A stretch of 64,000 bases of DNA from Hyaloraphidium curvatum SAG 235-1 (taxonomy: Eukaryota > Fungi > Monoblepharomycota): assembly GCA_025558095.1 (NCBI GenBank), contig JAIVFI010000008.1:372001-436000 (forward strand). Reading direction: 5' to 3'. Shown here in pieces: positions 6,148 to 62,464 of this stretch (positions are counted from its first letter, which is position 1; each line of letters begins with the position of its first letter). Below the pieces are notes generated by a model that did not search any database, was not told the origin of the DNA, and saw nothing but the letters and a program-made list of their open reading frames with translations. The position numbers were made by a program, and so were the translations under genes.

Positions 6148-6401
6148 TCATCCCCGCGACCCCTGGCAACTGGTGGCCGACGCGACGACTGAAGAGAGAG
6201 ATATCTTTCTGCAAGCGTCAAGCTACCGAAACGCGTGCACGACGTGGATTCGCGGTGCCGGAAGTGAGTGTGATCGCGCGCGGATCTCCGCGGTCACCGC
6301 GAGACGCGCTGGTGAACGACGCCCTTCTGGGGCGCTCTCTCCTCCCAGCAATGCCTACTTGAAGAGCAATTCGCGTTCCTTCAATCATCGTCGCCGCCGA
6401 A

Positions 6402-9400
6402 ATGGCGATGCTGTTCACGAAGTCCCTGTCGGACCTCATCCGGGGCCTGCGGGGGAACAAGCGGAACGAGGAGGCGTACATAACCCAATGCCTGGACGAA
6501 TGCCGGAAGGAAGTGAGGTCGAGCGACATGGACATAAAGGCGCAGGCGGTAGCGAAGCTGGCATACGTTGGTGGACGGCCGGGCGCGTTCCCTGGCCTCG
6601 CCAGGCTGACGCCTGCGATCGACGCGTCGGCAGCTCAACATGCTGGGCTACGACATGGCGTGGGCTTCGTTCCACATCGTCGAAGTTATGTCTTCTTCCA
6701 AGTTCGCGTACAAGCGGCTGGGCTACCTCGCTGCGAGCATGTCGTTCCAGCAAGACACCGAAGTTCTCATCATGTGCACCAACCTTTTCAAGAAAGTGAG
6801 CTGTCATCCGTGTTGAAACATGATCTCGAATCTCATGCCGAGCCCAGGACCTCTCCTCGAACAACTACCTGGAGGTCTCCTTGGCCCTCGGAGGACTGGC
6901 GCAGATTGTCACCCCGGACCTGGCGCGGACGCTTCTCAATGACCTCCTCAACATGCTCAACAATTCGCGACCATACATTCGGAAGCGGACCGTCCTGCTG
7001 CTCTATAAGGTCTTTCTGAAGTACCCGGAAGCGCTAAAAATTGCGTTCCCGCGACTCCGGGAGAAGCTCGAGGATCCGGACGAATGTGAGTCGGTCATTG
7101 CACTCCTACTCGCGCTCTGAGTAAGGTTATTCCGTTTGCAGTGGTCGTCTGTGCTGCAGTCAACGTGATTTGCGAGCTGGCACAACGGAACCCGAAAAAC
7201 TACATCATCCTCGCGCCGCAGCTCTATGGACTCATGACGACATCGGCCAACAACTGGATGCTGATCAAGATCGTGAAGCTGGTAATGTCGCGTGGGATCT
7301 CGGAGGATCGCCATAGTCGTGACACCCGTTTCTGGGGCAGTTTGGGATCCTGTGCCCCATCGAGCCGAGGCTTGCCAAGAAGCTCCTTCCTCCCCTCACT
7401 AACCTTATTCAATCCACCAACGCCATGTCCCTGCTGTACGAGTCGATCCACACTGTCGTTTCCGGAGGTCTCCTGACCGCCGAAGGCGTGGACGCGTCGT
7501 CACTGTCGGCACTTTGCATCAGCCGCCTGCGTATCTTTTTGGAGGAAACCGACCCCAATCGTAGGCTGGCCATGACCTTGTTGCTTCGCCTGCTCATTTG
7601 GCACCGCAGTCAAATACCTTGGCCTGTATATCCTTGCGAAGCTTCTCACCGCGAACCCGCGGGCCGTTTTGGAACACAAGGAGATCGTCTTGAAATGCCT
7701 CGAAGACGCAGATTCCAGCATCCGACTCCGGGCGCTGGACATCGTGACGGGCATGGTCACGCCGAAGAACCTGAAGGAGCTCGTGAAGAGGCTCATTCAC
7801 CATCTCGTTCCTTCGGAGAAGGGGCCCAATTTTGCGCTGGAAGCGCAGTACCGCGACGAGGTCGTGCGCCGCATCGTGGCCCTGTGCAGCAGGGACACGT
7901 ACGAGCTTGTCCAGGATTTCGAGTGGTACATTGATGTACTCGTGGACCTCGTGCACTTTTCTGGCGTGAACGTCAGCTCGTTGCTGAACGCTCAGCTCAT
8001 GGATGTCGGCATCCGGGTCGTCGGCGTTCGAGAGTACGCGGTTCAAATGATGGTAGGCCAAGCGCTCACCAGGAATTGTGCGCTGGTCTGACCTGAACAT
8101 GATTTCAGGCTAAGCTGCTCGTTGACCGCAAGCTCTTCGATTCTGCGAACTCTCCGACTTCCAATATCGAGGTGATCCACGCGGCCGCTTGGTTGGTCGG
8201 CGAGTTTCGGAAGTTCCTCTCGGACCCTTTCGCCACGATGGCATCTCTACTTGGACGGCCAATCCAGCGGCTTCCTTCCTACGTGCAGATTGTCTGCCTT
8301 CAGAGCGCAATGAAGGTCTACAGCAGCCTCATTGCCAACACGGATGGAGTACCTATCGCAGCGGAGGAGTTTGGCCACGTTACGAAGGCGGCTCGGGAAG
8401 GAATGGAGGCTTTTGCTGGGAGCTCGGACTTGGAGGTTCAGCAAAGGGTGGGTGGCCGGTGCCTGTCTCCACGCGGCGTGGTTTTCTGATTGTTTATCCT
8501 TGTCAGGCAAGCGAGTTTCTACACCTGCTCGTCACCGCCGAACGCCACGCGGGAGAAAAAGATGTTGCACGGAATGTCCTGCAGCTCAGGAACGTCTTTG
8601 TTGGCGATCTCAATCCCGTGGGGCCAAAGGCACAGAAGCGGGTGCCGGTCCCGGAAGGACTCGACTTGGACGAGGCTTTTGTGCGGCTACCGGAACGGAC
8701 AGAGGATTCTTTGGCGTCGCCCGAAAGGGCAAACGAGCGCGGGGAGGAAGATGGTCTTGCTCCGGCGCAAACTTCCCCGAGAAAATCGAGGCGGCGGAGC
8801 ACGAAGGCACGGGCGGATGTGGACGAGTTCAAGGAGACCGAGCAGCAGGCCACCGAGGAGTCCGAAGAAGATGAGGAAACCAAGGAGCAGGTGGGTCAGA
8901 CTCACAGCATGGCGGAGCAGCGGTGACCTCGTCGTGCAGCGGAGACGGGAACGAGAAGCGAGGATCGAGAGCGACCCTTTCTACATCTCGCGCCCGAGGC
9001 CGCAGAAGAAGCAGCCCGTCGTACCGGAGCCTTTGGAGCTGGATGTGGACTCGATTCCGATCGTCAAGCTGGACATTGCGGATTTTGCTGGTTCGTAGTT
9101 TCGGGCAGCACGTTCGACAACCCCTGACGTTTCTCCAGCTCCCCTCACCATTGCCAAGGCGAAGAAGGCTGGCAAGAAGACGAAATCCTCTGAACCCGCG
9201 GGGCCATCGAAGACGTACCAGGTTGTGAAGGGAGAGGAGCTGCCCGAGGGGGCAGTGCCGATTGACGAGGTTGCGGAGAGCCGGAAGGCGTCGCGACGCA
9301 AGGGAGCGGCGGGGGTGGACGACGAGCTCAATCTTGCGAGCGTTGATTTGACGGAGGAGCTGGCCGAGTCCGCTCCGGCAGCGGGCAAGGCCAAGACCCG

Positions 9401-9488
9401 CCGAAAACCAAAGAAACGGACGGTGGTGGTCGACGCCGGCGAGGTGCAGGGCACACCTGCGGATCGATCTATGTACGAGTCTCTCTGA
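6402..9488 (+). CDS. APL5: AP-3 adaptor complex subunit delta (multi-exon)
   Basis: MLFTKSLSDLIRGLRG, FHIVEVMSSSKFAYKRLGYLAAS, VTPDLAR, SANNWMLIKIVKL, DLNPVGPKAQKRVPVPEGLDLD. Confidence 0.95.
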
Positions 9489-9782
9489 ACTCATGGATGC
9501 GGGGGGCCATTTCGTGCGTGTGATCAACGGTGCAGTGACGTGGGTCTGTTAGTCGCGAGGGGAGGGCGCGAACTACTTCCGAATTAAGGGCCCAGGAGAG
9601 ATATAGTCCCGCGGCAACTCCCGCGACGAATCTACCGAGTTCTTTGTGGCGCTCCGAACGCCGGCGCCGGACACTTCCGACGGCTCCTTGTGTGCGCGTG
9701 GAGGCCGACAACAGTGGACGTCGACGTCTCCCGACAAACTCGCCCCCGTGCCACCCCAACCGCAGCCGCGGCTTGTTAGGAG

Positions 9783-12740
9783 ATGGATTCGGACCCGCTC
9801 TACTACCTGGCGCCGGACTTTGAGCCGGGCAACCTCACCGTTGCGGAGCTAGCCTCCGTGCTGACGGCCAACGACGTTCCGGTGCCGCAAACCAAGGCGA
9901 AGAAGGCCACCTACGTCGAGCTCTTTCAGAAGCACATCACGGGGAAGAGGTCGCAGCTGCTGAAGCAGTACAAGCTCGCCGGAAGCATCAAGCCGAGCCG
10001 CCGCGGCATCGTCGCTGTGGCCGCGGACGGGACGGAGCGGGAACTCGGAAGCAGCGACGAAGAAGAAGCGCACGACACGAGAAGTCGCTCGGGTCGCAAC
10101 AGACCCACCAAGAACGTGAGTCCGTTCGCCGCGGACCGGCTAGCATGGACCTGAATCTGCCTCGCCAGCGCCGCAGCAGCTCAGTGCCTGCCCCCGAACC
10201 GCAGCTCTCGACACGGCCCACACGCGCCCGGAACCAGAGCCCCGAGCGTCTCCTGGCCAGGATTCACCCGGACGCGGAAGAAGCTCCACCGACCCGCAGT
10301 GGGCGCAATACGCGGAAGAAAAAGGCCGATGAGCAACCCCGCTCCCAGGTGAACGACTTCCAGGTTCGCTCGTGCAAAGCTGCTTGCCGTGCGTCCGTTG
10401 ACCGCTATATCCATTGCAGAGCGATGGCGAGAACTCTCCGCCCGCAAAGGGCAACTCGCGCGGCAGGAAGGAGGCGGTCAAGACGTCGCCGAAGCCGCAG
10501 CGAGTCGCAGCGGCCGAAACGCCTGCTCCCGACACCCCGCGCCGGCGCGTCCAGCTTCGTCGCATGATGTCGCCGTCTGCTGGGGCGACTGACTCGGAGC
10601 GCGTGCCACCCCCGACTGTGTTCACTCCTAAAAGCAAGAGCACGGCGCAGTATGACATGGCAACCTGGGTTTCGAAAACCGTGGACGTCTCGGACTCGGT
10701 CGACGACGTCTATGGAACGGGACCGCAGGCTCTCCGTGCCCTCAAGAACATCCCGTACGAGAAGGACCTTCAATGCCAGTTCCACATCCCGGCGGTCACT
10801 CGGGCGAGCCAGCTTATCGGCATCCGCCTCCTGGACGAGAAGATATTCGACGAGGTAGGCCGTCAAGGTGCTTTGCAGTTCAGTGACTCGGTGTCTAATT
10901 TGTTGATTGTGCAGGTGTTGAAGCGTGTCGCCGAAGCGCCGAACCGCCTGCGACTGCGCGACGCTGTCGAGAGCTGGCTGGCTGCGCACGGCATCACCTT
11001 CGGCGACAAGAAACTGGGCTCGAGCATGACGCCCAAGCATGCGGCGGGCGGCAAATCTACAGCTCAGTTCGACTTTGCCAGCTGGACGCAAAAGGACATA
11101 ACGATGACCGAGACCGTCGACAACATCTGGGGCACGGGGCCGGCGACTCTGAAGGAGCTCAAGGCTTTGCCCGCGGACTATGAGTTCGTTGGTTTCTACT
11201 TCTGTCCAGCAATCACCACGGCAGGGCAGCTCCTCGGGTTGAGGCTCCTCGGCAAGGATGAGTTTGCGAAGGTTGGCGAAGAAGCCTTCCGATCGACCAT
11301 TCTTGCTCACTGTGGCCCCTTGTGCAGGTCATGGACCTCACCCACCCGTCGTTCATCGCCCCCAACAAGGCGAGGCTGACTGCTGCAATCGAAGGATGGC
11401 TCGAGAACCACGGCGTCACGCTTGACGACAAGGAGATCGAGGCCAAACCGCGCGCGATGACCGCCTCTTTGGAGGCTCCCGCAACCCGCACCGAAGCTAT
11501 CGACCTGCTCCGCCGCTTGTCTCGCCAGAGCACTCGCGACTCGAACGGTGCCGCTTCCCCCACGTCCCCTCTGCGAGCTGCAGCCCAGGGCGGGCAGCAG
11601 ACTTCTCCCAGCCGACTTGGAGAGACCAGGAAGCTTCACCGCAACCTGCTCCGTGGACCGGCGGTGCAGTCCAAGACCATGGAGGCCTCGCCTCCGCGCG
11701 TGCCGCCGATGACCGCACCTGTTGACTCGGACGTTCCTCCTCCGGCCGATGTTGAAGAGATCGACGCTTCCGCCGGTTCCGATGCCGCCACGATGCCGTC
11801 GGATCTCGACGCCTCCATCACCGCCTGGGTGATGCCTGCCGCGGCCGAGTCCGCGCCGTCGGAGACAGCCAGGCAAGCGATCGAAGATGCCCTGCAGACG
11901 CTTCCGGCACCCAAGAAGCGAAGCAAGACGTACATGCCCCTTATCGCCGCAGTACTCGCGGGTTCCGGCGCCTACGGCGCGGTGACCACCCTCGAAGGCA
12001 ACAGCGCCGTGGCGCAAAGCGTGCAGTCGCATGCGAGCGCCGTGTCCGCAATGGTGCGGGCGCAGGCCGAGGCCGGCATGGCCATGCTCCCTAGCATGCC
12101 CGCTGGCGTCGAGTGGGATAAGCTGCCGGGCGTCGAGTACGCCGCCGAGCTCGGAAACCGCTACGTCGCGCCTGCTGTCGATTCGGTCTGGCAGGCGATC
12201 GCGCCCACCATGGAGTCGGCCTGGCAGGCGGTCGCCGATTCAGGGCTGTACGAAAAGGTGGCGGACGCCATGCCTGCTGGAAGCGTGGACCCCGCGATTT
12301 CGGCGACCCTCGCCGCCTCCATCTTGGCCTTCCTCGCCCGATCGCGCGGCAAGAAGACCAAGCCCGCGGCATCCGCCGTTGCGCGAGCGATTGCGGTGGC
12401 CCTGCGCCAGGCAAACGGCGGCCTGGACGTGGCCGAGCTGAAATTGGCCCTGGCGAAACAGGCTCCGGACGGCGTTGCGCCGTTTACGGAAGCCGAGTGG
12501 GATGCAATCCGCACGATCGCGGTCGAGGAACTCGGCGTCGTCGTGCAGTACGAGCCCGAAATCTGGTCGGTTGCTGCTCAGGCGGAGCCGATCATGCCCG
12601 AATCGCCGAAGCGGGGAGGCGTGGTGCTCTCCAAGAAGCAGCTGTGGGAGAAGCGCGCGGAGGCCGATCGGGTCGCCGATCCCAAGGCGCGCGCGGCCGC
12701 CCTCGCTGCGCTGGAAGTGACCGAGGAGAGCGACATCTAG
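9783..12740 (+). CDS. Src1/Man1-like inner nuclear membrane protein: HeH/LEM domain, two BAF-like repeats, two hydrophobic segments, C-terminal winged-helix-like region (exons 9783-10115, 10169-10363, 10420-10854, 10915-11271, 11328-12740)
   Basis: The N-terminus YLAPDFEPGNLTVAELASVLTANDVPVPQTKAKKATYVELF is the fungal HeH/LEM signature. All four GT-AG introns join the exons in frame. Hydrophobic stretches are MPLIAAVLAGSGAYGAV and AISATLAASILAFLA. Confidence 0.8.
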
Positions 12741-12920
12741 AGAAGAGCCGGGAACCGGGCTTGAGTTGGGACTGTTTGCCGAAAATCTTGCAATCTTCCG
12801 GGTTGCCGCTTGTCGTAATGAAGCAAAAGCTATCGCAAGGTGTACCACAAAATGCAGTAATCTATCGTCTTCCGGGTATCTAAAGCAACAGTCGCTCAAC
12901 TGCAGACACTTCCTTGAAAA

Positions 12921-14621
12921 TCAGCAATTCGTAAAACACGGTTGCCGAGTAAAGGCTTCGAACCGCCTCCGTATGGTCCGAATCCTCCTCTTGAAGGGCG
13001 TCTCCCCCGCTTCAGCGTCCCCAATCGGCGCCTCGTCCATCGGCACCTCCACGTCGACCTCCTCCTCGTACACCATCACCGGCGGCCTCTTGACGAGGGC
13101 ATGCGGCGATCCCGCCTCGCCGTCGGTCGACAGCGCGGCGCGCCTGAGGATCTCGACGGTGTTGAACGCCTGGCCCCGCATGACGGCCTTCTGCTTGCGG
13201 AAGAGCGACTCGTCGAAATCCGGGTCGAGCCGGAAGAGGGCCTCCAGCTCGGCAAACGTCCGGCTCCACCACTCGTTGGACGTCAGCCGGGGCAGCACGA
13301 GGTCCGACGTTTCCTTGGAAAACGGCGTGTGCGAGAGCGGGAGGAAGGACCACGCGGGGGGGTAGGAGCGCCAGTTGTCGGGGTGCTTGTGCGGGAAGGC
13401 GAGGCCGTTGTCGATGGCCCCGAGGCGGATCTTGGGGCCCGTGCGACCATCAGCGGCGCCGGGGACGGGGTTCAGGGAGGGCGAGCTTGCGTCGCCCTGC
13501 TGGCTGCCGATCTGGGTGGATTCGGAGGACAGCCGGGCGACGTCGAGCTCGGGTGCCAGCAGGGCGGCGGCTTCGGAGGACGAGGCGCCGATGTCCTGCA
13601 GCGAATGCTCCGATGCGGGGCGCTGGCCGGGTCGCTGCACCGCGCTGCTACTGCCGGCGCCTGCCGGGGCCGGCGGCGCGTTGGCCTTTTGTTTCCGCGC
13701 GTTCCGGTCCGTGTCGTCGCGCACGAGCAGGTTGTCCAAGCTCCGGTCCGTGTTCCGGATGAGGATGTCCAAGATGCAAAGCTTCTCAAACTGGAAGCGG
13801 AATTCGCGCTGCGTGTCCTCGTCCCATCCCAAAGGGTGGCCGCGGCCCATGTGCAGGTAGGCCAGCCGGTCGTATCCCGTGCTGAAGAAGAGCGTGGCGT
13901 CCTCGTATCCCTCCAGAAAAATCTGGAACGAGCCGATTTTTGGCGGGAGCGGAGCCCAGCCTTTTTTCGCGGCCCAGCGTTCCGCTTTGGAGTAGTGGAA
14001 CGACGGCGAGGCCAGCGTCACGACCTCGGTGCGCGGCACCAAGCCCAGGTTCAGCCGGCGGTCGATGTACGACGCGCCTGCCTCGGATATGTAGCCCACG
14101 TTCGGAATGAGGCACGAGCGGCCGAAGCAGAAGGGGAACAGGTGTTTGTGCACCCATTTGGTGAACTTCGGGTTCATGCGGCCGTACGGTTCCTCGTCGC
14201 GCGGTTTGAAGACGCCGACGATGCGGCCGGCCTTGTTGCGCGCAAAGTACGAGCCCGACGAGCCCTTGTGGATGCGGGTGGGAAACACGCCGTCGTCGAT
14301 CGCCTCGCGCACCGAGTCGACGACGAGTGCGAACTGGGCTGCCGACACGTCGGGGTACGCGCGCAGCGGCGAGGCGGGCGCGCCGTCCTCGGGCTCGTCG
14401 GCGAGGATGTGGTCGACCTGCGCCGACGCCGTCGACGCGCCCGAGCGGTGGCGGACGTGCGCGGCGCGCGTGACGAGCAGCGACGTCGCGCGGCGCTTCG
14501 GCGTCGCCGCCCCCCGCGGCGCGCGCACCCGCGGGATCAGCGGCGTCTCGTCGCCCTGCTCGGCCGCCGCTACCGCCTCGTCGGGGCCCGGCCCGCTGTC
14601 GGGGCTCGCGGGCGCCGACAT
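12921..14621 (-). CDS. LSB6: Phosphatidylinositol 4-kinase type II
   Basis: GSSGSYF, VFKPRDEEPYG, CFGRSCLIPNVGYISEAGAS, LDILIRNTDR, AIDNGLAFPHKHPDNWRSYP. Confidence 0.95.
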   Translation of the reverse strand: MSAPASPDSGPGPDEAVAAAEQGDETPLIPRVRAPRGAATPKRRATSLLVTRAAHVRHRSGASTASAQVDHILADEPEDGAPASPLRAYPDVSAAQFALVVDSVREAIDDGVFPTRIHKGSSGSYFARNKAGRIVGVFKPRDEEPYGRMNPKFTKWVHKHLFPFCFGRSCLIPNVGYISEAGASYIDRRLNLGLVPRTEVVTLASPSFHYSKAERWAAKKGWAPLPPKIGSFQIFLEGYEDATLFFSTGYDRLAYLHMGRGHPLGWDEDTQREFRFQFEKLCILDILIRNTDRSLDNLLVRDDTDRNARKQKANAPPAPAGAGSSSAVQRPGQRPASEHSLQDIGASSSEAAALLAPELDVARLSSESTQIGSQQGDASSPSLNPVPGAADGRTGPKIRLGAIDNGLAFPHKHPDNWRSYPPAWSFLPLSHTPFSKETSDLVLPRLTSNEWWSRTFAELEALFRLDPDFDESLFRKQKAVMRGQAFNTVEILRRAALSTDGEAGSPHALVKRPPVMVYEEEVDVEVPMDEAPIGDAEAGETPFKRRIRTIRRRFEAFTRQPCFTNC

Positions 14622-14702
14622 GTCCAACAGGGCGGGGCTGCTCGCGGGGCTGAGACCCGAAATCAGGCGCGCCCTTGAACCTTCGTTGGTCACTGGTTCT
14701 CG

Positions 14703-16331
14703 ATGGAGGCCGCCAGATTGCGGAAAAAAGCTCGCCGTCGATGCTACGTCGCGATGGCGTGGGACGTGTTTGCTGCCTGCACCGGCCTGGCGCGTGTCGG
14801 AACCTGGCTCCGTGCGTTTTCAGGGCACGCGTTGCCAGGGCCCGCACAGGAGACCCAGATTGACGGGGCCCCGAGGAAGCCGGCGAACAAATGGCTCTCT
14901 TTGTCTCGGACGCTGTGGTTGGCTCTTTTGGCCCTCGTTGTTGCGACGGTACCTGCCACGCAAGCTTCCTCCCTCGACGCGCTTCCCGTGGGCGCGGAAA
15001 AGCACCGCAAAACTCCTCCTCCTCCTCCTCAGCAACCACCCCCCACGGACTCTTCCACCTACAACCTGGCGTGGCACCTGGGAGCCGCCGCGGCCGTGCT
15101 GGGCGCGTCCGCCCTTGGCGCCCTCCTCCCCTTTGCCTTTGCGCGATCCAAATCCCTCCTGGACAATGCCGAGTATTTCAACGCGGGCAAGGCGTTCGGC
15201 TGCGGCGTGCTGATCGCCACGGCCCTCATCCACATGCTGCCCCCGGCCTTTGAGCAGCTTCGCGGGGTTGAAGCGCTCAAGTTCTACCCTCCCATCGCCG
15301 GCCTGCTCGCGCTCGCGGCGATCCTGGCGATGCACCTAGTTGAGTTCTTTGCGGTCGAGTCGGTGCTTAAGAGCGGCGTCGCGGAGATGCCAGAGGACGA
15401 CAAAGCGCCGCCTCGAGCCGTGAGGGAAGAGCACGATCATGACCACAGTTCTGGCGCAGGACACGCCCATTCCCACGACAGCGGGGCACACAGTCACCAC
15501 GATGGGGCAGCACACAGTCACCACGATGGGGCGGCAAGTCGGCTCCACGATTCCATTTTGACTCTGCCGGAAGGCCAGGACGGGATCGTCGAGGACGAGA
15601 CCCGGCCGCTGCTCTCCACCGTGCCCCTGCCCGTCCCCCGGTTCCGCGGGCTGGACTTTACCGCGGACTTCCCCGTGCCTCCGGCGCGGCCGGCGTCCCT
15701 CGACGGGAACCCCGTCGTGCAGGTCACGTTCCGCATCGTGCAACCCAAGAACTGCAGCCACGGCCACTTGGAACCGTGCCAGCCCAAGATTTGCGGGCAC
15801 ACGCACGTGGACGCCTTCGATATCGCCGACCTGCAGAGGCGCAAGATCTCGACGTACCTGCTCTTTGGTTCCGTCGCGGTGCACTCGGTCATCATCGGCA
15901 CCACGCTCGGTGTGGAATCGGACGCCGCCTTCCTCAGCCTCCTCGTCGCCCTTGTCTTCCACCAAGGATTCGAGGGCCTCGCGCTCGGTGTCAAGCTGCG
16001 CGAGAACCGCGAGCTCGACCCCGACTTCGGCCGGCGCACGACCAACCTCCCCACCATTGTGCTGTCGCTGATGTTTGTACTCGCTGCGCCCTTCGGCGTG
16101 CTGCTGGGCATTTTTCTGAGGACGAAGTACGATACCGGCTCGCAGACCTCCCGGATGGTGCAGGGCACCCTGGATGCCATGTCGGGCGGCGTCTTGCTCT
16201 ACGTGGGGCTTGTCACCTTCCTGTCGGGCGAGCTCAACGTGCACACGGGATCCAAGTGGGGCAAGGTGGCGATGGTGGTGTGCTTGTGGCTGGGGGCGGC
16301 GGCGATGGCGGCGGTCGGGCTGTGGGCTTGA
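14703..16331 (+). CDS. ZIP-family zinc/iron transporter (Zrt1-like) with His-rich loop
   Basis: KAFGCGVLIATALIHML, His-rich loop, VAVHSVIIG and FHQGFEGLALG. The start codon is uncertain (14703 or 14754). Confidence 0.92.
   Translation: MEAARLRKKARRRCYVAMAWDVFAACTGLARVGTWLRAFSGHALPGPAQETQIDGAPRKPANKWLSLSRTLWLALLALVVATVPATQASSLDALPVGAEKHRKTPPPPPQQPPPTDSSTYNLAWHLGAAAAVLGASALGALLPFAFARSKSLLDNAEYFNAGKAFGCGVLIATALIHMLPPAFEQLRGVEALKFYPPIAGLLALAAILAMHLVEFFAVESVLKSGVAEMPEDDKAPPRAVREEHDHDHSSGAGHAHSHDSGAHSHHDGAAHSHHDGAASRLHDSILTLPEGQDGIVEDETRPLLSTVPLPVPRFRGLDFTADFPVPPARPASLDGNPVVQVTFRIVQPKNCSHGHLEPCQPKICGHTHVDAFDIADLQRRKISTYLLFGSVAVHSVIIGTTLGVESDAAFLSLLVALVFHQGFEGLALGVKLRENRELDPDFGRRTTNLPTIVLSLMFVLAAPFGVLLGIFLRTKYDTGSQTSRMVQGTLDAMSGGVLLYVGLVTFLSGELNVHTGSKWGKVAMVVCLWLGAAAMAAVGLWA
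15487..15533 (+). repeat. 24-nt tandem duplication encoding AHSHHDGA x2 in the ZIP His-rich loop
   Basis: GCACACAGTCACCACGATGGGGC occurs twice in tandem. Confidence 0.85.
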
Positions 16332-35545: not shown

Positions 35546-38500
35546 CTAGCCGTAGGCCCCGTTCCCGTCCGCCAATGCCCCAGCATCTTCGGCACCGAAG
35601 AGCTCGTCACCGGATCCAACAGCGTGCCCATCAAGGGCGTCATCCAGATCAGCGAGACCGTCCTCCATGTGGAGATTGTCCACCATGCTTTCGATCAAAG
35701 CGGCGTCCACATCGCCATAGGCGGCTCCGAGCGGCTTCGATCGGCGCATGAACAGGTCGGTGTCCCAGTTCCTCTCCAGCAGACCCGCTTCAAAGACCCG
35801 CAACTGCAGCTGCAGCGGAAGCTCGGCGTCGTGCACGCATCCGTGCCTAAACAAGAAAGCCAAGAAAGTGCCCCAGGTGCTCTCCACCGTGGAAAGCAGG
35901 TTTGGATCCCCAACAACCACAAGCAAGGCTTTTGCCCTGGTGATTGCCACGTTGAAGCGCTGCTCGCTGTGCACCAAGCCCATGTCGTTCTCCATGTCTC
36001 GTTCCAGGAAGGCTTGGGAGCTGCGCACGCAGCTGATTATGATAATCTTGCGCTCCATGCCCTGGTAATCCTCGACGACGCCGACGTTGACTGCCGCGTG
36101 TCCTTTCTTCCTCAGCGCGAGACGGATGCGGCGCACTTGCTCCCGGAAGGGCGCGATGACACCAAAATCCTCGTACTTGACTTTGATAGCAGGGTCGGCC
36201 AGGAGCGACTCGACGACATCGACGACTTTTGCCACCTCGTCGTCGTTGTACCCTGAAGAGCACGACTTTCAAGCGATACGTCATAAGGTCGCCCAGAGCA
36301 CTCACAGGAATCTCCGTTGCCGATCCCCGCATCCTGCCCAGCAACACCGAAAAAGGCAATCGGGAACTCGGAGCCCTTGAGCTCATGCCACGGCAAGAGC
36401 GACTCGGTGACCCGGTCGTCCGCAAACGGCAAAAGGCTGTCGTTGTAGTACATTTGGGAGGGTATCTGCGATCGGCGCCAGGCATGTCACCTGCATTCTG
36501 ATCCAGCGACAGGGCCCCCGACGAAGATACTCACCATCAGGATGGACTTGTGGCTGCGATAGTTTCGGCGGAGGTGGACGAATGGGGCGGAGAAGTCGCC
36601 GTGGTGACCATCCTCATCGCGGTAAACGGGCAAGGCGTGCAACCGCTCCAAAAGGGAGCGCTTCAAACCCTTCTCGCGGGCAAAATCCGAAACGACGCGG
36701 GGTCCCAACTGTCTGTGGTCGCCGCAGAGAACGAGCTGCGGCGGCCGCCCGGCTCTGGCTGCACCCCCGGCAGGTGCCTTGCGGAAGACGACGCTCATCG
36801 GTATCAGAATTTCGGGTTCCGTTGCCTGCCCGCATTCGTCGACCAAGCAGTGGGTCCAGTGCGGACTCGATGGCTTGGCCGAATGATAGATGGGGAACGT
36901 TGCCCTTGCGTAATCGTCGTAGCCCGCCAAAGTGCCCTCGTACTGAGCGTTCGAAAGACCCAAGTGCACCAAGAAAGCCGCGTCGAAGCAGGTGCAGACC
37001 ACCACGCGGAAAGCCATGAGCTTCGTCTTGTCCGGGAAGGTGAAATAGCCAGACTGCGAGGCCGTGTACGGCAACATGTCGTCCGCGACTTCAGCAAACG
37101 TTCGCGCCGGGTTGCAGAGCCGGAAAAGATCCTTTGGCATTAGATGAGGGATCAGACGCTTCAAAATCGTGTCGGCTGCGCTGCTCGAAGGTGCAGTCGC
37201 CAAGATACGGGCATCCGGTCTGTGCTGCAGAATCTGCAGTATGGCTTCCACGATGGTTGACGTTTTGCCGGTCCCGGGGGGGCCGAAAATTACAAACGGA
37301 CACGGTCCGTAAGAGTCTTCCACGATCCGCTCCACAGCCAGTCGCTGCTCAAAGTTAAGCTCCGCGTTGTAGACATCGAGGGTGGGAATCTTTCCCAGCG
37401 CCGGCTGTGCAACGGCTTCGGCCTTTAAAGGGTCGATCTGTGTCCGTTCAGGTTTGACCGGGAAAAGCCATTCCTCGCGACCTTCCTCGCCGAAGAACTT
37501 CACCGCACGAGCGGCAGCGCCGAGCGAAGCTTTGTCCGGCTCCCAACGGACGTTGTAGGTGCCGTGAAACGGAAACTGCGGGTTCACCGCGACGTAGACG
37601 CGCTGCAATCGCCGATCCACGGCCCATACAGGGCACCAGTAATCCCGCCCGTCAAAGGGCACCGTCTGCTGGCGAATGCGCAGCTGGTCTCCGACCTGGA
37701 TACGGGGCTGATCGTCCATCAAGCCCGGTATCTCCACCACGGCAATGAGCGGGCCCAGGCCCATTTCGCCGAAACGGGAGGTCGTGGCCTGATCGAAGGC
37801 GACGTGTGCCCCGTACATCTGATGCCGCGCGCAGCGGTCAACCTGCGCCGCCAGTTCGGATCCCAAGAGCAGCCGGAAGAACGTAGTGTACGTTTGCATT
37901 TCAAGGGTCCCGGGGAGCTTAGGTTTCAGCACGGGCTGTACCTCGGGGAGGTGGATCGACCAATCCAGCTCAGCAACCAGGTGCGGAACGGGCGGCAAGC
38001 CCTGCAGAAAACGCGCCCTGAGGTCTGGCAATGGAGGAGGCAGGCCGGCGAAAGCATATCGTCCCAGACTGTCGCCAAGGAGTTTCAGATTCGAAGGCAC
38101 GTAGGGCTCAGCGTAGAGCGCGCTGCCGAAATCAAAGACGGTGGCGGGTTTGACTCGCAAAGTGAGGGAGCGGAGCAACACGAAGCAGTCGTTGACGACG
38201 AGCAAGAGGTCTGATCGGATGTGGCCGTACTGGCGCAGTCCCGTGGCAGAAACCTCGACCAGGAGCTCTTCCCCGGGCTTGATAATGATAGGCTCGTTCC
38301 CGCCGCCTGGCCGCTTCACCCTCGCCGCAAACTCGTCCCGCGGGGGGACGATGGTCAAGAGCGAAAAAGAAACGGGCTTATCCTGCGTTGTGTTGCGGAC
38401 AAAAATGCTCTGCGTCAGGGTCGTACCGCTCCTCAGGGACTGAAAGTCCAGCACCTCTCCATTCCCTCCAAGCCGGCGAGCCTCTTCCGAGAACAAACGC

Positions 38501-38886
38501 AGGAGCTCCGTCAGCGACGTCAAGGCGCTGCCGCGCGTCGCCCGATCCCCTTGCAGCGCGCGATACTGCTTCAGCCGCTGGATGATCCGCGAATGGATCG
38601 GGGGAACTTCCTCGGAGGGAGCGGGGGCCGGTTTCGGGGTCACTCGGGGCTCAGGCGTCATGGAAAGCTCCGGTGTGCCAGGAGACTGCTGATTTGACAG
38701 TCCTGGCGGTGCCCTTGCAGATCCCAAGAGCGGAGAGCCCGCTACGGATCCTGATTGGGATCCGGCGGGCGATTGGGCCTTTTGCGCCGACCCGTTCAAG
38801 CGGGGCGACGGCAGCCCCGGCGGAGGCCGCAGCAGGGGGCTGCCTTGAGCCACAAGGCCCTCCCGGCTGCCCTCGTCGCCTGTCAT
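35546..38886 (-). CDS. MOV10/SDE3-like UPF1-family RNA helicase
   Basis: FGPPGTGKT, ILATAPSSSAAD, VDECGQATEPE, GDHRQLGP, NYRSH, VEDYQGMER and RFNVAITRAK, plus a MOV10-type N-terminal Ig-like/beta-barrel region. Confidence 0.88.
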
Positions 38887-39887: not shown

Positions 39888-41505
39888 TCACTCCTTCCCC
39901 ATCTTCCGCTGCCAATCGAACCAGAAGAGCATGATGGCCAGCGGCTGCCCGATGATGCAGAAGCTCATCCAGAAGTGCAGATTGCCCACTGTATCCGACA
40001 CCTCCTTCGGCGGCCTCCACCCCAGCGCGTCCCGGATCTTGGCGACCGCGCCGTCGAGGTAGATCATTGGCACCTGCGCGAGCATGCCCAGGGCGGCGTA
40101 GCCGTAGAGCACGTGCGTGGGAACGCCGATGATGAGCTCGTGCAGGAGCGCCGAGACGGTGAAGACGATGAGCTGCGATGCCATGGGGGAGAGGGCGTGG
40201 TTGCGGATCAGGGGGATATACTGGGGGGGGCGGGTGTTCATGTCAGCCGAGGGACACCGGCAGCGATCGCGGCTCCGAACCCACGATGTGCCTCTTCGCC
40301 CAGGTGCTCACGGGGAGGTTCCAGAGCCTCCAGTACTGCCCGTAGCTCGTCGAATTCCACCACTCCCCGAAGAAGCGCCTGTCACCGAACCGCAGGGCTT
40401 CCGCAAAGGCGTTGAGGAACGAGTGAAATGTTAAATAGAAGCCGAGGATCCAAATATAGAGGGAGGTCATCGACAGCTTGAGCAGCCTCTCCGCGAGCTG
40501 CCCGATGGTCTTTGCGTTGCGCGTGTTCTGCAGCGTCGGTAGAGCGTACTGACGAGTGAGGAAGAGGATCGCGAGCGAGACGACGACCAGCTCCAGGACC
40601 CTCTTTGCAAAGTAGCTCTTGCGGAACCGCCGGGTCCTTGGGTAAACCGGCTGGTAACACAGCGTCGGAGCCAGCCAAAAGTAGAGAGCGTTGCCGAAGG
40701 TGAGGTTCTGGGGATACGGGAGCTCGTTCGGGTCAAACGGCGGGGCGTCCGTCTCGAGCAGCGCCGCTTCCTGTGAGTCCTTGACAGGGTCCTCGGCCGG
40801 CCGGGGGCTTTTGGGGACCGGAATGCCTTGCCCGCGGCGGGTCGTGTCGACGAGCTCCTGCCGCAGCTCGCGGTTCACGAGGCAGTAGCTGATGAGCTTC
40901 AGGAAGAGGATCGTGGGGAGGAAGAGGGCGCACATGCCCGGCAATGGGTGGTAAATGCCGAACCAGACGACGAGGGTGGGTATCGAGATCTCCAGCGCGA
41001 TGTTGAGCACGTGTAGGGTGGGTACGACGGCGGTGGCGATCGGCTGCCCCTTGGCGGCGATTTCCGCGGCAGCACGGCTCTCAATGAGTACGGCAGCGGC
41101 GAGGTGCACCGGCATCAGAGCCAGGCACAAGCCGGCCATCAACCAGTCCCGCGTCGGGGCGCCGAAGCCGCCAAAGTCGATGAGCAGGCCATACTTCGAG
41201 TAATTTTCTAGCACAAGCCGCACGTTGGCCACGAAAAGGAGCAGTAGGCCGAGATTCAGGAAGCCGCGGTAGTTGTTCTCCGGACTTTGCTTGTCGAACG
41301 GCGAGGCTCTGATGCCGGAGTGAACCAAGTACGCGTGCGAATAGAACCCTGGGAGCGAGTTCCGGCGTTCCGGCTTCCCCTTGGCATTGCCATGTGCGCG
41401 GTCAGCGTCCTCTCCGGCTGGCAGGTGACTGTCGGCAGCCCTCGTGCCGGAAGCCGCCTGCGGGTTCCGCTGGCGCAGGACGCGGGCTGGCGACGCCTCC
41501 GACAT
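39888..41505 (-). CDS. DGAT1: Diacylglycerol O-acyltransferase 1 (MBOAT family)
   Basis: NYRGFLNL, FWLAPTLCYQPVYPRT, FGDRRFFGEWWNS, YWRLWNLPV, VSALLHE, GNLHFW. Confidence 0.92.
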
Positions 41506-41674
41506 CCCGCAAAATGGCACAGACGTGCAGGAAACTGGAGCCGGCCAGAAAGAAGGGCTCTTCGTCCCGAGCTGTCTGACGTGTCGAAGGTCAGGGTGCA
41601 GCTTGGCACAGCCGCATGTTCGCGCTGCCCGATCACGCCCGACTGTGCATTTGGACTTGCGCCGAAAAGCGACA

Positions 41675-42857
41675 ATGCCGGGCAAGTCGCCCGAGGGCGG
41701 CGCGGCCACGTGAGTCCCCGAGGCGCCTTTCGCGGCCCCGCTGACGCGCCTCCGCCGCGCCGACCACCGTGCCGCCGCCCCGTGACCGGCCTCCCGCCTG
41801 CCACGCCGCGCCCGCCTCCGCCTCCACTCCGTATCCCGCGCCTCTCAGCGCGCCGCCGGACGACGAGCCGGCCGACGACTACGAGAGCGACGAGGGCTCC
41901 GACGCGGCCTCGGACGCGGGCGGCGCCGCAAAGGGCCGCGGCCTGGGAAAGGGGAAGGGGAAGGGCGTCAAGCGGGGCATGCCGTCGTCGCTGGCGCACC
42001 TCGACGACGCTGCCGCCGACGACGCGCTGAGCCCCGGCGCGTCGGACGCGGCGGGCAGCGGGGCCTACTCGGCCGGCGGGGACTCGGCCTCGGACGCCGC
42101 CGGTGGCGGCGCCGCGTACGACGAGGACAGCCCGGTAGAGGAGTACGAGGAGGACGGCGCGGAGGACGACGGCGAGGGCAGCGGCTACGAGGAGGTGCCG
42201 TGCCCGCGCGGCCGGTTGGAATGTCCCCCCCTCACGCGTCCCCCATCCAGAACGGCGCCGTTGCGGTCTACTACGAGGAGTCCGAGGACGCGGACGACGA
42301 CGAGGAGGACGCGTATGCCGACGACGCCGAGTTTGCGGAGATCAAGGACCGCGCGCCGGTCTCGGGGGAGGGCTCCCGATCGGGCTCCGAGAGCGAGGGC
42401 GAGGGCGACGAGGTCGAGCAGGGCTCGCCGTCGGAGCCCGAGGACGAGGAGGACGATTATTTGAACGAGGGGAGCGGCCAGCGGCCGCAGCTGGCCGGCA
42501 AGGGTGAGCTGAACTGCGGGTGGCCGCCGTGCCTGACTGACACCTTCGCCGGTTTCAGGCCTGCCGGAAGCCTCGCCCGAGCCCGCGGACGAGCTCGGCG
42601 AGGACGACGAGTTCGAGCAGAGCTACCTCGCCCCGGGCGCCGTATATGGCGCGGCGCCCGACGACGCGCCGCCCACGGGGGGCAAGGGCCCCAAGCGGAA
42701 GCGCGACGACGAGGCCGCGGACGACGACTTTGGGGACATGGCCGCGTTCGACGCGGAGAACGCGGACGTCAACGAGCTCTTCGAGAGCGAGTTCCTCGTC
42801 GGCGGGGAAGGGAACAAGCGGCAGCGGATCGACGAGTTCGTGGAGGACCTGGAATGA
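41675..42857 (+). CDS. Highly acidic low-complexity protein with basic NLS-like motifs (multi-exon)
   Basis: Asp/Glu-rich exons joined by GT-AG introns, with KGPKRKR and NKRQR motifs. Ends EFVEDLE*. Confidence 0.6.
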
Positions 42858-51988: not shown

Positions 51989-54900
51989 CTAGGTTTCGGT
52001 TTCGGCAAACTCGCAGTCCATGGCTGATTCCTCCGTATCATCTACGCCTGCGTTGAATTGAAGCATGTACCAGAACGTGTGCACAATCGGAAGCATCGCC
52101 CGCGGTGCGAATGCGTCCGGTGCAGCTTCTTCGGCGCGCGTCTCGTCCAGCCAGGACCGCTCCATGGCCGCATGCAGTTCCCGGAGGCCGTCGATATCCG
52201 CGGTCTTCTTCTTCGAGTGGTTCGCCGGCACACACACAGTGAGCTCCCTCAGCCGGAGGGATTCGGGCTTGGTCGTCTGAGCGCAGGATCGCTTGATGTC
52301 TTCCAGCACCAGCATCGTCAGCGGGATCAGCCGCGTGCGCGTGCCCGGTTCTGCCGCAGCGGGTTCGCCGCGACCTTCCGGGGCTGAACGCAGCTCGTCC
52401 ATGGTCGGGCAAACGGTGCGATCGACGCGCACGTCCCGCACACCGACAATCAAGAAGCCCCCGTCCTTCAGCCGCGACACTGCCGAGCGCGCGGCATCCG
52501 AAACCACACCTCGATATGCTTGGATCCAATCGCCGGCCGGCAGGATGGCTTCTGGGCCAAAGGCCAGTGGCGGGACGAGGATCAGGTCCAATTTGGCAGC
52601 CTGAGGGACCTGCACGGTTGGCGCCTTGCGCCATAGGTCCAAGTGGCTCCCAGGCTCCGGATCCGGTATCGGGAGCAAGCCAAATTCCTTCATCTTCAAA
52701 CGGTTGGCGGCGACCTTTGCGAACCGAGCCTGCTCGTACTCTGACAGCTCCTCCCGAGGCTCTGGCTCGTCGGATTTCTCTTCGACCGCAAGTGCCGGCA
52801 GGCCCATCGTTGCAGGGAACGAGCATACGCGAGCGTCTTTGAACGAGCGCAGCGCGATTGCGGTTCCGAATGCGCTCAAGTCATGAACCTCACAGAGTTG
52901 TTCGTTCCTCCCAAATCGCTCGAGGATGCGCGAAACTGAAAGCTCTTCGAAGGACGCAATCCCATCGAAGCTCGGTATCTCCCACAGAGTCCCCCGAGCC
53001 CCGGAACCTCGATCTCGGAGGAGGAAAGGAAGCCTCTTGACGCAGATCGTCCGCGGCACCCTCGAGATGAGCTCCTGCACGTCGCTTGGGAGATCGAAGC
53101 GGTGATGCTCACCCGCAGGAACCTTGCGAACAATGGCAACCAGCTCGTGATTGAAGAATTGGAACCCGAAAGTCGAGGACAAGACTTTCCCCAGGGGCGA
53201 GTGCTCCATGAATCTCTGCCCCTTCACGATAAGCTCCTCAACTTCGAAACCGGCGTCGAGAAAGGCGCGGACGAGATCAAAGGTGATGGGCTGATATATC
53301 CGGTTTCTGGATCCGAACGTCAGAGCACCCTCCCGAACAAGCTGTGGAAAAGCCTACCGCCGATTGTCGCCCATGCAGAGAGTCGCCCTTCTCCAGGGCC
53401 TCAGCAAACGGTACGCCTCGCGTGCGACAGCCTGCAGAGCCTCGCAGAACAGAACGGGGCTACTGATGTGGGACAGGTCCCCAGGAACATCGTCTGTGTA
53501 GCGGATGGCGTTCTTGTACGGCGGATGGCAGAGCACGTGGTCAAAGGCACCCTCCTCCACTTGGGGCACGGCACCCAGGAATCGAGCATCGCCCACAACG
53601 AGTTTGGGCCGGTGCGCGGGGGTGATGCCGTGCGAGCCTGCTGGCAAGGCGAAGTGGAGGTTGCGCCTCGAGAGCAGCACGGCGGAGGGATTGATGTCGA
53701 TGCCGACAAGCTTCCGCCGGAGCAGGAAGCTCTCGACTGCATCCGTGCCCTGGCCGAGAAAGTTGGAGAGGACCAGATCGTCCGGCTTGGTGTATCGGAG
53801 CAAGGACGCGCGCGGCACTTGCGGCAGCCACTGGCCATGATATGCACCCGAATGCGAAGCCCAGCGCGGAGCACGGTCCTCAATATCATAGAAGGTGGAG
53901 TCGTAGAAGAGGCTGTAGAGCTGGTCATCCGCTGGTGCGTAGCTCTTGAGCATGCTAGTTCTTGCGGACGGCGAAGTGTCCGATGCGGTTGCTCCAGGTG
54001 CTCCGAGGATGTTGCCTGAACGAGTGCTGTGCAATAAGCTACGCACGGTGTCCATTTCCTGCTGCAACGTCCCGACCGCGGCGTCCATGCTAGCTTCGAG
54101 GGCTCCCGTGCAAATGCCCGCCTTGCCGTAGCATTCCCGACAAGTCGGGAGCTCCCCAGGTATCGCCAGACTCGCGTCGAAGATTTCGTCACCCCAGCAG
54201 TAGAAGCAGCTCGTTTGCGCATTGCGAGGTCTCTTGCGAGGTCCGGGCACTTTCTGGAGAAGGATGCATCGGTCAGTTGTTGGGATGACCGCACAAGACG
54301 AACCGCTCGAATTCCCATCAGCTTGTTCCGCTCGGCTCTAACATCCACCATAGAGCTCGAAGCATCATCCTGCGCAGACTGGAACGAAGTCAAGACCCAT
54401 CGCTCGTCCTTGTGTTGCACAACGTGCTGGACATCGGGAGCGCCGGAGGCCGACTGCTTCGCTCCGAAGCAGTCTTTGCAGCAGTCCACCGTGGAGAAGG
54501 CATGATGGTCCCGGCAGGAGGCGCACGTAAACCATGTGTCATTCTGGCCGAATGCGGTCCCGCAGCCGTCGCAGCTGTAGCTTTCCTGGAATCCAAAGAG
54601 GCGCGGATCGTGCTTGGCGCACCAAAAGACCTTGCCGGACAAGAACTCGGCAGGCTTCTGGCCAGTGCATCTAACGTGAAATGACCACCTGCACTCTGGT
54701 GCGAAACATCCCACGCTGGCACCTCGGTACTGGCACTTTGCGCACTTGATCTTGCGTGCGCGGTGCTTGAGGACGTGCGCCACATTGACCCACTGGGGTC
54801 CGAACTTGAAGACATCCGGATTGAACTTAGCGCAGTTCTCATGGGCGAAGAACTTGACCACTTTTTTCCCCTCGGCATCTAAACTGAGCAGGAAGCCGAC

Positions 54901-55728
54901 GTCCGGCCCCGAGCCGATGAAAGGTCCGCTGGAACCCGCTTCCATGCCGTCGTCTTCCTTGTCGTCGTTACAGAACGCGCATATTCGACGTACGTCCGGC
55001 TTGGGCTGGATCTTTTTCTTCATGCCGCGGCGCCGCGGACGCAGCGGCCCGCTGACACCGTCGGGAGTGGGCGAAACAGCGTCAATGTCAGTGTACAGCA
55101 GTGACTCCACGTCCGTATTGAGCGTCAGGAAATCGGGTACGCAAGGGAACAGGGAACAGGTGGCCAGAGCCTTGACGGAGCGGAGAAGGAACTCCCGAGC
55201 AAACGCGCTCATGGTGTGCTCATGGTGGAACGGGAAGCGGGCACTGTAGCACTGCATGCAGAGGCTGTATGGCTCGTCCGTGCAGTAGGTGCAGTAGAAC
55301 CTAACGTGCTGTAGCCTGTTGGAGCAGACCTTGCAGCACTGTCCCTTTGCGTTCGCGAGGCTCGGATTGAACTTGAGCTGGTGCGATCCGGGCGCGGCCC
55401 GTTTTCCGCGGCCCACAAACTCGATCTCCATCGAGGGAGGTGGAGTCAGAGGCTCCAGCCCTCCTCCCGTGTCCGGCGTCCGGGGGTCCGAGGCCGTCAA
55501 GGGCAGCCCCTCCTCATCGCACACAATGAGACGCTTCGACGTAGCGGAAACCTTCTCATCCGGCCATCCTGGAACGGATTCTACGTATCTGCACACGATG
55601 GAATCGTCCTCTGGTCTGTATACAACCATACGGACGGGCCACCTTTTTCGTTTTGCGTCCACCAGGAGCGCCGAGCGATTGGGCGAGAAGAAGGGGGGCG
55701 GTTCCCGCAGCCGACGCCGGGAGGACAT
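51989..55728 (-). CDS. Chromatin-associated N6/N4 DNA methyltransferase: Tudor/chromo-barrel-like, ZZ, extended PHD, ZZ, C4 finger, MTase, KRI-like motif, degenerate second MTase
   Basis: HSGAYHGQWLPQVPR...VLSNFLGQGTD (motif I), VGIDINP, DHVLCHPPY (motif IV) and EAYRLLRP. Zinc fingers CKVC...YCTYC...CMQC, CAFC...HENC...CAKC...GASVGC...FHVRC and CDGC...CASC...CKDC. Also ELSEYEQARFAKVAANRLKM. Confidence 0.82.
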
Positions 55729-55892
55729 CGTGATGCGCGGGAATTGGATGCGGGATCGAGTCGTCGTCTGTGCGCGAAATGCAACTTCCTGCCCGCCGGA
55801 TGTGAAGGGCGCAGGACGCGTTGCTGCGATAAACCGATCCCGCCCCACGGTGACGCGAAGTCAGATCAGTGCCTCATCTGGATCGACATGGT

Positions 55893-62232: not shown

Positions 62233-62464
62233 TGTGCAGGTCCTCGGAGGTAGAAGAGTCAGACTGGTCACGGGCCACTTCGCATGTCAAGTCCGCGGCT
62301 CCAGCGCCCAGGAAAGCCAGAAGTGCCCGCCTCGAGCAAAGAGCGGACGTCGTCGCAACGAATCCTTCGCTCCCTCGCGTACCGGGCTTCCCGAGGAGGT
62401 GCTGGGCTGGTGCGGCGAACCGTTGCTGCTCGTTCCACGCTCCTCTCCGATCCACGATCCGACA

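Follow-up and report, generated by a model that had tools for sequence, protein, structure and literature searches.

We analyzed a 64,000-nucleotide stretch of the genome of the early-branching fungus Hyaloraphidium curvatum SAG 235-1 (Monoblepharomycota; assembly GCA_025558095.1, contig JAIVFI010000008.1, positions 372,001 to 436,000; hereafter the window) that contains, at positions 9783-12740, a gene for a predicted fusion protein. Over 21,379 bases that were compared, the window and this public scaffold are identical. Its product combines an N-terminal HeH/LEM-like domain with two tandem repeats that very probably fold like barrier-to-autointegration factor (BAF), followed by two hydrophobic segments and a small conserved C-terminal domain. 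Five exons with 910 codons were read from the sequence for this gene. All four introns are of the GT-AG type, lie in phase 0, and are 53-60 nt long, and the GC content at third codon positions (GC3) of the exons is 0.75-0.84. The public gene model at this position, P0017 (KAI9027849.1, DFJ74DRAFT_505317; 475 aa), has introns 1-3 spliced identically. For comparison we used the orthologues P0001, P0002, and P0016 and two syntenic loci from sequencing runs, L001 and L004. The features of the gene are as follows.

9783-10115, plus strand: exon 1, 111 aa; start codon and HeH/LEM-like domain, the same in P0017
9825-9947, plus strand: HeH/LEM-like domain of the LAP2 N-terminal, DNA-binding type, from Pfam and PDB matches
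10116-10168, plus strand: intron 1, 53 nt, phase 0; position common to L001 and L004; spliced in P0017
10169-10363, plus strand: exon 2, 65 aa; basic low-complexity linker with clusters resembling nuclear localization signals
10364-10419, plus strand: intron 2, 56 nt, phase 0; present in L001; L004 lacks the intron and is open across the junction
10420-10854, plus strand: exon 3, 145 aa; linker, then the first 73 aa of repeat 1
10636-11004, plus strand: predicted BAF-fold repeat 1, interrupted by intron 3; G-T-G turn at 10714-10722, equivalent of Gly47 at 10819-10821
10855-10914, plus strand: intron 3, 60 nt, phase 0, no in-frame stop; spliced in P0017; not in P0001, P0002, or P0016
10915-11271, plus strand: exon 4, 119 aa; completes repeat 1, then the linker between the repeats and the first 73 aa of repeat 2
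11053-11426, plus strand: predicted BAF-fold repeat 2, interrupted by intron 4; G-T-G turn at 11131-11139, equivalent of Gly47 at 11236-11238
11272-11327, plus strand: intron 4, 56 nt, phase 0, at the same residue as intron 3
11328-12740, plus strand: exon 5, 470 aa and stop; completes repeat 2, then an S/T/P-rich linker, both hydrophobic segments, and the C-terminal domain
11937-11993, plus strand: hydrophobic segment 1 (probable membrane span), with a basic cluster ahead of it
12282-12338, plus strand: hydrophobic segment 2 (probable membrane span), with a basic cluster after it
12375-12563, plus strand: conserved ~63-aa domain from a three-orthologue alignment, winged-helix-like by eye only

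A preliminary description of this locus, made from the sequence alone, had placed the HeH exon and the repeat exons in one gene rather than in separate genes, and the comparative evidence from orthologues and synteny bears this out. The genes for an AP-3 adaptin, the fused protein, a PI4-kinase, and a ZIP transporter follow each other in the same order at L001 and L004, where introns 3 and 4 are both missing and the products run on from repeat 2 into the exon 5 region. Because these products are unbroken across that junction, the HeH exon, the repeats, and the C-terminal part almost certainly constitute a single gene, as judged by sequence comparison. Exon 1 shares 59-60% identity with two orthologues, and exon 5 is 39% identical to orthologue P0016 from end to end (E = 2e-78). 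Orthologues P0002 and P0016 are devoid of intron 4, and their frame is continuous there. P0017 keeps intron 4 as coding sequence and ends at position 11379, leaving a 1.36-kb open, GC3-rich frame unannotated; no annotated gene covers the exon 5 region after this stop. Retention of intron 4 in the public annotation may be a mistake in the gene model or may reflect a soluble isoform, a situation that recalls LAP2 alpha/beta. All sequence searches were performed with single exons, continuous genomic open reading frames, or tool-returned proteins, including P0017, as queries.

Further details of the gene and its neighborhood emerged from the same comparison. The order shared by the window (~6400-16331), L001, and L004 comprises the AP-3 adaptin, the fused gene, the PI4-kinase (minus strand), the ZIP transporter, and an acetyltransferase, at a GC content of 54-65%. 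P0001 lacks intron 3 and ends two residues past the intron 4 junction, as if intron 4 were present, and L004 has an intron of its own within repeat 1 (L004:9878-9961). L001 and L004 also carry an in-frame N-terminal extension of 20-26 aa with a conserved Phe/basic pattern (L001:9559-9618 and L004:9089-9166), possibly an amphipathic helix, which is absent from the window because of an in-frame stop two codons upstream of the ATG at 9783. Amid divergent linkers several motifs are kept: R-R-S-S-S-V after intron 1 (10169-10186), a conserved T-P followed by a basic R-V-Q-L-R-R stretch (10534-10566), and a conserved T-P or S-P directly ahead of the K-S-T-A at the start of repeat 1 (10624-10647). These are candidate kinase sites and a candidate nuclear-import signal.

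The repeat peptides reported earlier were found at the coordinates given for them. Over 57 aa, the N-terminal parts of the repeats share 40% identity (pairwise E = 3e-18), which, together with the position of introns 3 and 4 at the same residue, points to duplication of one intron-bearing unit. An HMMER scan of 1.84 billion cluster representatives revealed four credible relatives of the repeats, namely the tandem orthologues P0001 and P0002 and the stand-alone ~140-aa proteins P0005 and P0006; P0016 and P0017 were added by a word-based search. Repeat 1 of the window is 69-84% identical to repeat 1 of three relatives and 37-39% identical to the stand-alone relatives, and repeat 2 is 57-72% identical to repeat 2 of three relatives. 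Across four species, identities of 64-84% for repeat 1 and 57-75% for repeat 2 were obtained, as compared to 29-48% between repeats 1 and 2 of the same chain. In the phylogenetic tree, the repeat 2 sequences formed a group with 100/100 support, and repeat 1 was unresolved. The higher identity between species than within a chain and the repeat 2 clade indicate that the duplication is older than these species and that the two repeat types have been kept distinct.

The repeats are the most conserved portion of the whole protein and are neutral to acidic in charge. So far, the fused architecture is confined to H. curvatum and three relatives. Pattern scans of viral, prokaryotic, and JGI metagenome contigs revealed no relatives, and none appeared among predicted viral structures. 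We rejected P0003, P0004, and P0007-P0009 as relatives, since they are large repetitive proteins with short matches, and regarded phage primase/helicase tblastn matches (E = 1e-3 or worse, partial) as chance; enoyl-CoA hydratase and similar matches of the repeats were likewise treated as noise. The insertion of repeat 2 (11187-11216) is strongly aromatic, is shared by four species, and is unlike the one conserved in repeat 1; an inter-repeat or a membrane contact may be its role.

The assignment of the repeats to the BAF fold comes from P0005, a stand-alone protein that is 39% identical to both window repeats. In a comparison with Pfam BAF, P0005 matched profile positions 8-88 of 88 with an E-value of 8.5e-4, a match that we consider no more than suggestive given that about nine sequences were tried. 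P0005 was then modeled by AlphaFold2 without templates from an 11-row alignment of repeat-family proteins that included the window repeats and contained no BAF row. The model (predicted local distance difference test, pLDDT, 75; predicted template-modeling score, pTM, 0.68) was compared with the PDB by Foldseek, and ranks 1-8 were all occupied by human BAF, with probabilities of 0.97-1.00 and a best E-value of 0.03. The template-modeling (TM) scores were 0.57-0.63 by query and 0.65-0.71 by target over 90-95 columns at 18-21% identity. The next fold in the PDB was the helix-hairpin-helix (HhH) thumb of Y-family polymerases with a probability of at most 0.28. The profile and the structure matches both fall short of the usual thresholds and both concern P0005. 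Given that the same family is indicated over the whole domain by two different methods, we consider it very probable on the modeled structure that the repeats are divergent BAF-fold domains. The earlier view that they are BAF-like, and not members of an unrelated HhH/SAM fold, is thus upheld by the Pfam match of P0005 and the top Foldseek ranks of BAF.

We further compared the repeats with BAF at positions of known function. BAF numbering was placed on the alignment by eye, with human numbering anchored on residues named in papers; beyond residue 51, where a gap was set by eye, the register is a lead. The equivalents of Gly25, Gly27, Leu34, Ala42, and Gly47 are invariant in all 11 alignment rows, both glycines of the DNA-binding HhH G-x-G turn included, and the equivalent of Trp84 is invariant in each of the nine rows long enough to include it. 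Most repeats begin with K-S-T-A, a motif that sits about two residues away from the Thr3/Ser4 register. The N-terminal Thr/Ser switch of BAF is a target of phosphorylation by VRK1.

The invariant Gly47 equivalent lies on the central helix within a Q-L-I-G motif. In BAF, Gly47 is the center of the dimer interface, and the G47E substitution abolishes both dimerization and DNA cross-bridging (PMC5638020, PMC6212729). One face of the BAF dimer is made up of the first and last helices of its two monomers (PMC6212729), which brings the end of one monomer close to the beginning of the other, and thus a short linker can join two monomers. Counted from Trp84 in repeat 1 to position 10 in repeat 2, the spacing is 36, 37, 36, and 24 residues in four species, ~9-22 residues beyond what the domain ends themselves use. 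This linker length is compatible with an intramolecular pair, for which we estimate slightly better than an even chance.

The surface by which BAF docks LEM domains was also compared. The LEM-docking residues of BAF are Arg37, Phe39, Gln48, Val51, Leu52, Leu58, Glu61, and Trp62 (PMC6212729). Among their equivalents, Phe39 is replaced by Val/Ile, Gln48 by Leu/Ile, and Trp62 by Val/Ile/Thr in both repeats, and a conserved insertion fills the Arg37/Phe39 loop. Repeat 1 has similar residues only at positions 51, 58, and 61 (Ile58 and mostly Glu61), and repeat 2 has Glu58 and Lys61. The LEM-docking face of the repeats thus appears altered, with most of the LEM contacts lost.

Exon 1 matched two Pfam families above their curated cut-offs, HeH (E = 8.5e-9) and Thymopoietin/LEM-like (E = 2.5e-8), and had no match to Pfam LEM (PF03020) at E<=5. 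Its best PDB match was 1h9e, the LEM-like domain of LAP2 (residues 6-49). The LEM-like domain is an old, direct DNA binder, while the BAF-binding LEM domain is confined to Holozoa (PMC5630835, PMC3198171). By sequence assignment, the N-terminal domain is therefore of the LEM-like type that binds DNA and not a canonical BAF-binding LEM. When the HeH region was used to look for further Src1 proteins of fungi among exact-word-sharing proteins of 261-831 aa, only the protein of the window itself was returned.

In the C-terminal half, hydrophobic segments 1 and 2 have Kyte-Doolittle values of 1.42 and 1.58 over 19 aa and are rich in Ala and Gly. The hydrophobic peaks are ~115 aa apart with basic outer flanks, and both stretches recur in two orthologues at Kyte-Doolittle values of 1.5-2.0, again with basic flanks. 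This arrangement fits a hairpin with both ends in the nucleoplasm, and we regard anchoring in the nuclear envelope as likely. The two segments described earlier are thus present, and recur in both orthologues, with a hydrophobicity that is moderate. The ~63-aa domain that follows them shows a three-helix, two-strand pattern with two Trp residues and resembles the MSC winged helix by eye. Downstream of it, a charged helical C-terminal tail (12620-12720) is ~60% identical to P0016 and poorly kept in P0002; no family match was found for this tail. In its layout the protein is Heh1/Src1-like, with membership of that family unproven.

Based on these results, the best overall explanation, which we hold to be moderately probable, is a membrane-anchored DNA cross-bridger that arose by fusion of BAF-fold repeats. 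In Hyaloraphidium and its relatives, a divergent BAF-family domain would have been fused into an inner-nuclear-membrane protein of the Heh1/Src1/Lem2 type and then duplicated. The two hydrophobic segments would anchor the protein in the inner nuclear membrane with both ends nucleoplasmic, and the LEM-like domain would bind DNA directly, by analogy with LAP2, whose LEM-like domain is a direct DNA binder. Repeats 1 and 2 would fold as BAF monomers, as suggested by the structure search with their 39%-identical relative, and pack via the Gly47 helix into a fixed pseudo-dimer. Each repeat would grip the DNA backbone via its G-x-G hairpin, so that a single chain, assisted by the LEM-like domain, could link two duplexes at the membrane. 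We rate it as probable that the repeats bind DNA. The bridging unit would be held covalently at the envelope. A covalent fusion would make a LEM-BAF protein-protein contact unnecessary, and the fusion would thus replace, rather than prefigure, the contact used in animals. On this reading, the protein would be a functional analogue of animal LEM-BAF. It would likely serve to keep chromatin compact and against the envelope. In Monoblepharidomycetes, the nuclear envelope is fenestrated at the poles during mitosis (PMC6492006), and we conjecture that a membrane-held bridger would be useful in such a polar-fenestrated mitosis.

Several observations weigh against this explanation. Direct Pfam and PDB sequence searches with the window repeats, taken singly or as profiles, gave no BAF match. 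Neither the window repeats nor the orthologues matched Pfam BAF (PF02961), whose curated cut-off is 25 bits, and the score of P0005 (20.2 bits) lies below this cut-off. The best Foldseek E-value is only 0.03, and the confident model is that of the relative P0005 rather than of a window repeat, the fold being carried over by homology. An AlphaFold2 model of the tandem repeats had a pLDDT of 45 and is uninformative on the interface, and its Foldseek matches are meaningless. By eye, the fused repeats lack the equivalents of Phe49 and Trp62 that are found in published holozoan and stramenopile BAFs. As to the membrane part, the hydrophobic segments are weak, there is no Cys in the segment between the two spans, and the public model P0017 is devoid of this part altogether. 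Neither exon 5 nor its orthologues gave Pfam MSC (PF09402) or PDB sequence matches, and the winged-helix-like C-terminus of the preliminary description consequently amounts to a likeness by eye.

The alternative that survives best, although we rate it as rather unlikely, is that the BAF-fold repeats pair between chains (1-1' and 2-2') or act as independent monomers, giving a membrane-bound meshwork of protein and DNA or simple avidity in place of a pseudo-dimer. The invariance of Gly47 fits whatever pairing, stand-alone relatives that pair at all must do so in trans, the linker length varies from 24 to 37 residues, and the tandem model has no confident interface. However, a tethered partner is present at high local concentration, and the divergence within a chain (29-48% identity) with each type conserved is expected of a fixed heterodimer-like pair.

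Direct docking of the N-terminal domain, from the same or a neighboring chain, on the repeat pseudo-dimer would make the protein a single-chain LEM-BAF, with an interaction either ancient or reinvented. LEM and LEM-like domains have a common fold (PMC3198171), and the BAF dimer is bound asymmetrically by LEM (PMC6212729). The hydrophobic residue 58 and mostly Glu61 of repeat 1 versus Glu58/Lys61 of repeat 2 are a pattern that a one-sided docking site could leave. In contrast, the window domain belongs to the type that binds DNA and not BAF, the equivalents of Phe39, Gln48, and Trp62 are changed in both repeats, and an insertion occupies the Arg37/Phe39 loop. Moreover, at 58/61/62 the residue types of repeat 1 also occur in stand-alone relatives without a fused HeH, and the pattern may thus simply be ancestral. 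We therefore regard such docking as unlikely, and the Rosetta-stone LEM-BAF fusion proposed at the outset is not supported, given the LEM-like character of the N-terminal domain and the mostly changed LEM-contact positions of the repeats.

Nearly as doubtful is a composite scenario in which an asymmetric pseudo-dimer bridges DNA and docks its own LEM-like domain, a LEM-BAF contact that would be pre-animal or reinvented, and, in addition, the same divergent BAF clade was reassigned, in a different microbial eukaryote, to a nucleoid role in mitochondria.

The stand-alone single-domain BAF-fold proteins are P0005 (L002:3224-3658) and P0006 and P0015 (JGI sample 3300059473). They share a neighborhood with exo/endo-phosphatase and DDHD genes in a compact eukaryotic genome, which is syntenic in at least two related genomes. 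Their first 30 residues contain seven Lys/Arg, 0-2 acidic residues, and an R-x-Y/F-S/A motif. A basic, acid-poor leader with such a motif is typical of mitochondrial presequences, and these relatives are possible mitochondrial nucleoid proteins by this signature. A mitochondrial BAF-like protein, if true, would be unexpected.

It is quite improbable that the repeats have kept the BAF fold for a new job, such as protein or lipid binding via the aromatic insertion, or that they represent an HhH domain convergent on BAF. Their identity to BAF is only ~20%, they are neutral to acidic, the insertion of repeat 2 is conserved, aromatic, and hydrophobic, and there is a weak IMS-type HhH match (E = 0.011). 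On the other hand, no variation occurs in the G-x-G hairpin, BAF alone is matched by structure over the whole domain and other HhH folds in part, and the T-x-x-x-Q-L-I-G that follows the insertion also occurs, by eye, in published stramenopile BAFs. Finally, a main product in the annotated soluble 475-aa form (HeH, repeat 1, and a broken repeat 2), with the membrane part minor or unexpressed, has in its favor the retention of intron 4 in the NCBI model KAI9027849.1 and the non-consensus donor GTTGGC of this intron, but is very improbable in view of 470 open codons in exon 5 (GC3 0.79) with 39% identity to an orthologue in which this region is continuous with repeat 2, the equally weak donor of intron 2 that is nevertheless spliced in KAI9027849.1, and the loss of the last two helices of repeat 2 upon retention.

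Other genes of the window were assigned by Pfam and include an AAA_11 helicase (36487-38886), an MBOAT protein (40243-41709), a PHD/ZZ-finger protein (53401-55848), a nucleoside transporter (60640-62271), and an ERG4/ERG24 sterol reductase (62234-63766). In a related fungus, L004:18574-20598 contains one gene with a papain-type peptidase, EGF repeats, and discoidin (F5/8 type C) domains.

Among known systems, the repeats have in common with BAF/BANF1 (PF02961; PDB 1ci4, 2ezx, and 6ghd) the whole-domain fold, the G-x-G turn, the Gly47 helix, and the C-terminal Trp. Unlike BAF, they occur as two copies per chain within a predicted 910-aa membrane protein, each with an insertion after the HhH helix; their LEM-contact residues are mostly replaced, and their score lies below the Pfam cut-off. 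BAF outside animals has been published for choanoflagellates, Capsaspora, stramenopiles, a haptophyte, and a cryptophyte (Salpingoeca, Capsaspora, Phytophthora, Thalassiosira, Ectocarpus, Aplanochytrium, Emiliania, and Guillardia in the supplement of Koreny and Field 2016), with no fungus in that survey (PMC5630835), and yeasts have no BAF (PMC3198171). The stramenopile BAFs of Koreny and Field (2016) show, by eye, this insertion behind the HhH helix too, with T-x-x-x-Q-L-I-G coming after it, whereas all BAFs of that study are small and stand-alone, and none is fungal, tandem, or fused like the window protein. Our literature search, whose coverage left out most subscription journals, likewise found no fungal, tandem, or fused BAF. 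Since pre-animal BAF was already published, the window protein does not date the LEM-BAF interaction, and the suggestion that it places a LEM-BAF module before or parallel to animals is not sustained.

With Heh1/Src1/Lem2/Man1, the protein shares the N-terminal HeH, the long basic disordered linker, the two hydrophobic segments, and the small C-terminal domain; it differs in the missing Pfam MSC match, the Cys-free inter-span segment, and the two BAF-fold domains in the linker. LAP2 (thymopoietin) provides the best PDB match of exon 1 with its LEM-like domain, and LAP2-beta likewise positions both a DNA binder and a dimer of BAF at the inner membrane. However, LAP2 recruits BAF in trans via a second, canonical LEM, whereas the window protein lacks a canonical LEM and has its BAF fold in cis. 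The protein is a new arrangement of known parts and not a new class. A BAF-fold domain in an early-branching fungus that was missed by Pfam suggests that profile searches do not capture the full breadth of the family, whose 'loss in fungi' thus needs a structure-based re-check. In human cells, BAF dimerization, not LEM binding, shapes a single nucleus (PMC5638020). The covalent fusion of a cross-bridger to the envelope would be an independent solution to the problem that animals solve by LEM-BAF binding, and it would separate bridging from LEM docking in a protein whose two halves are independently mutable.

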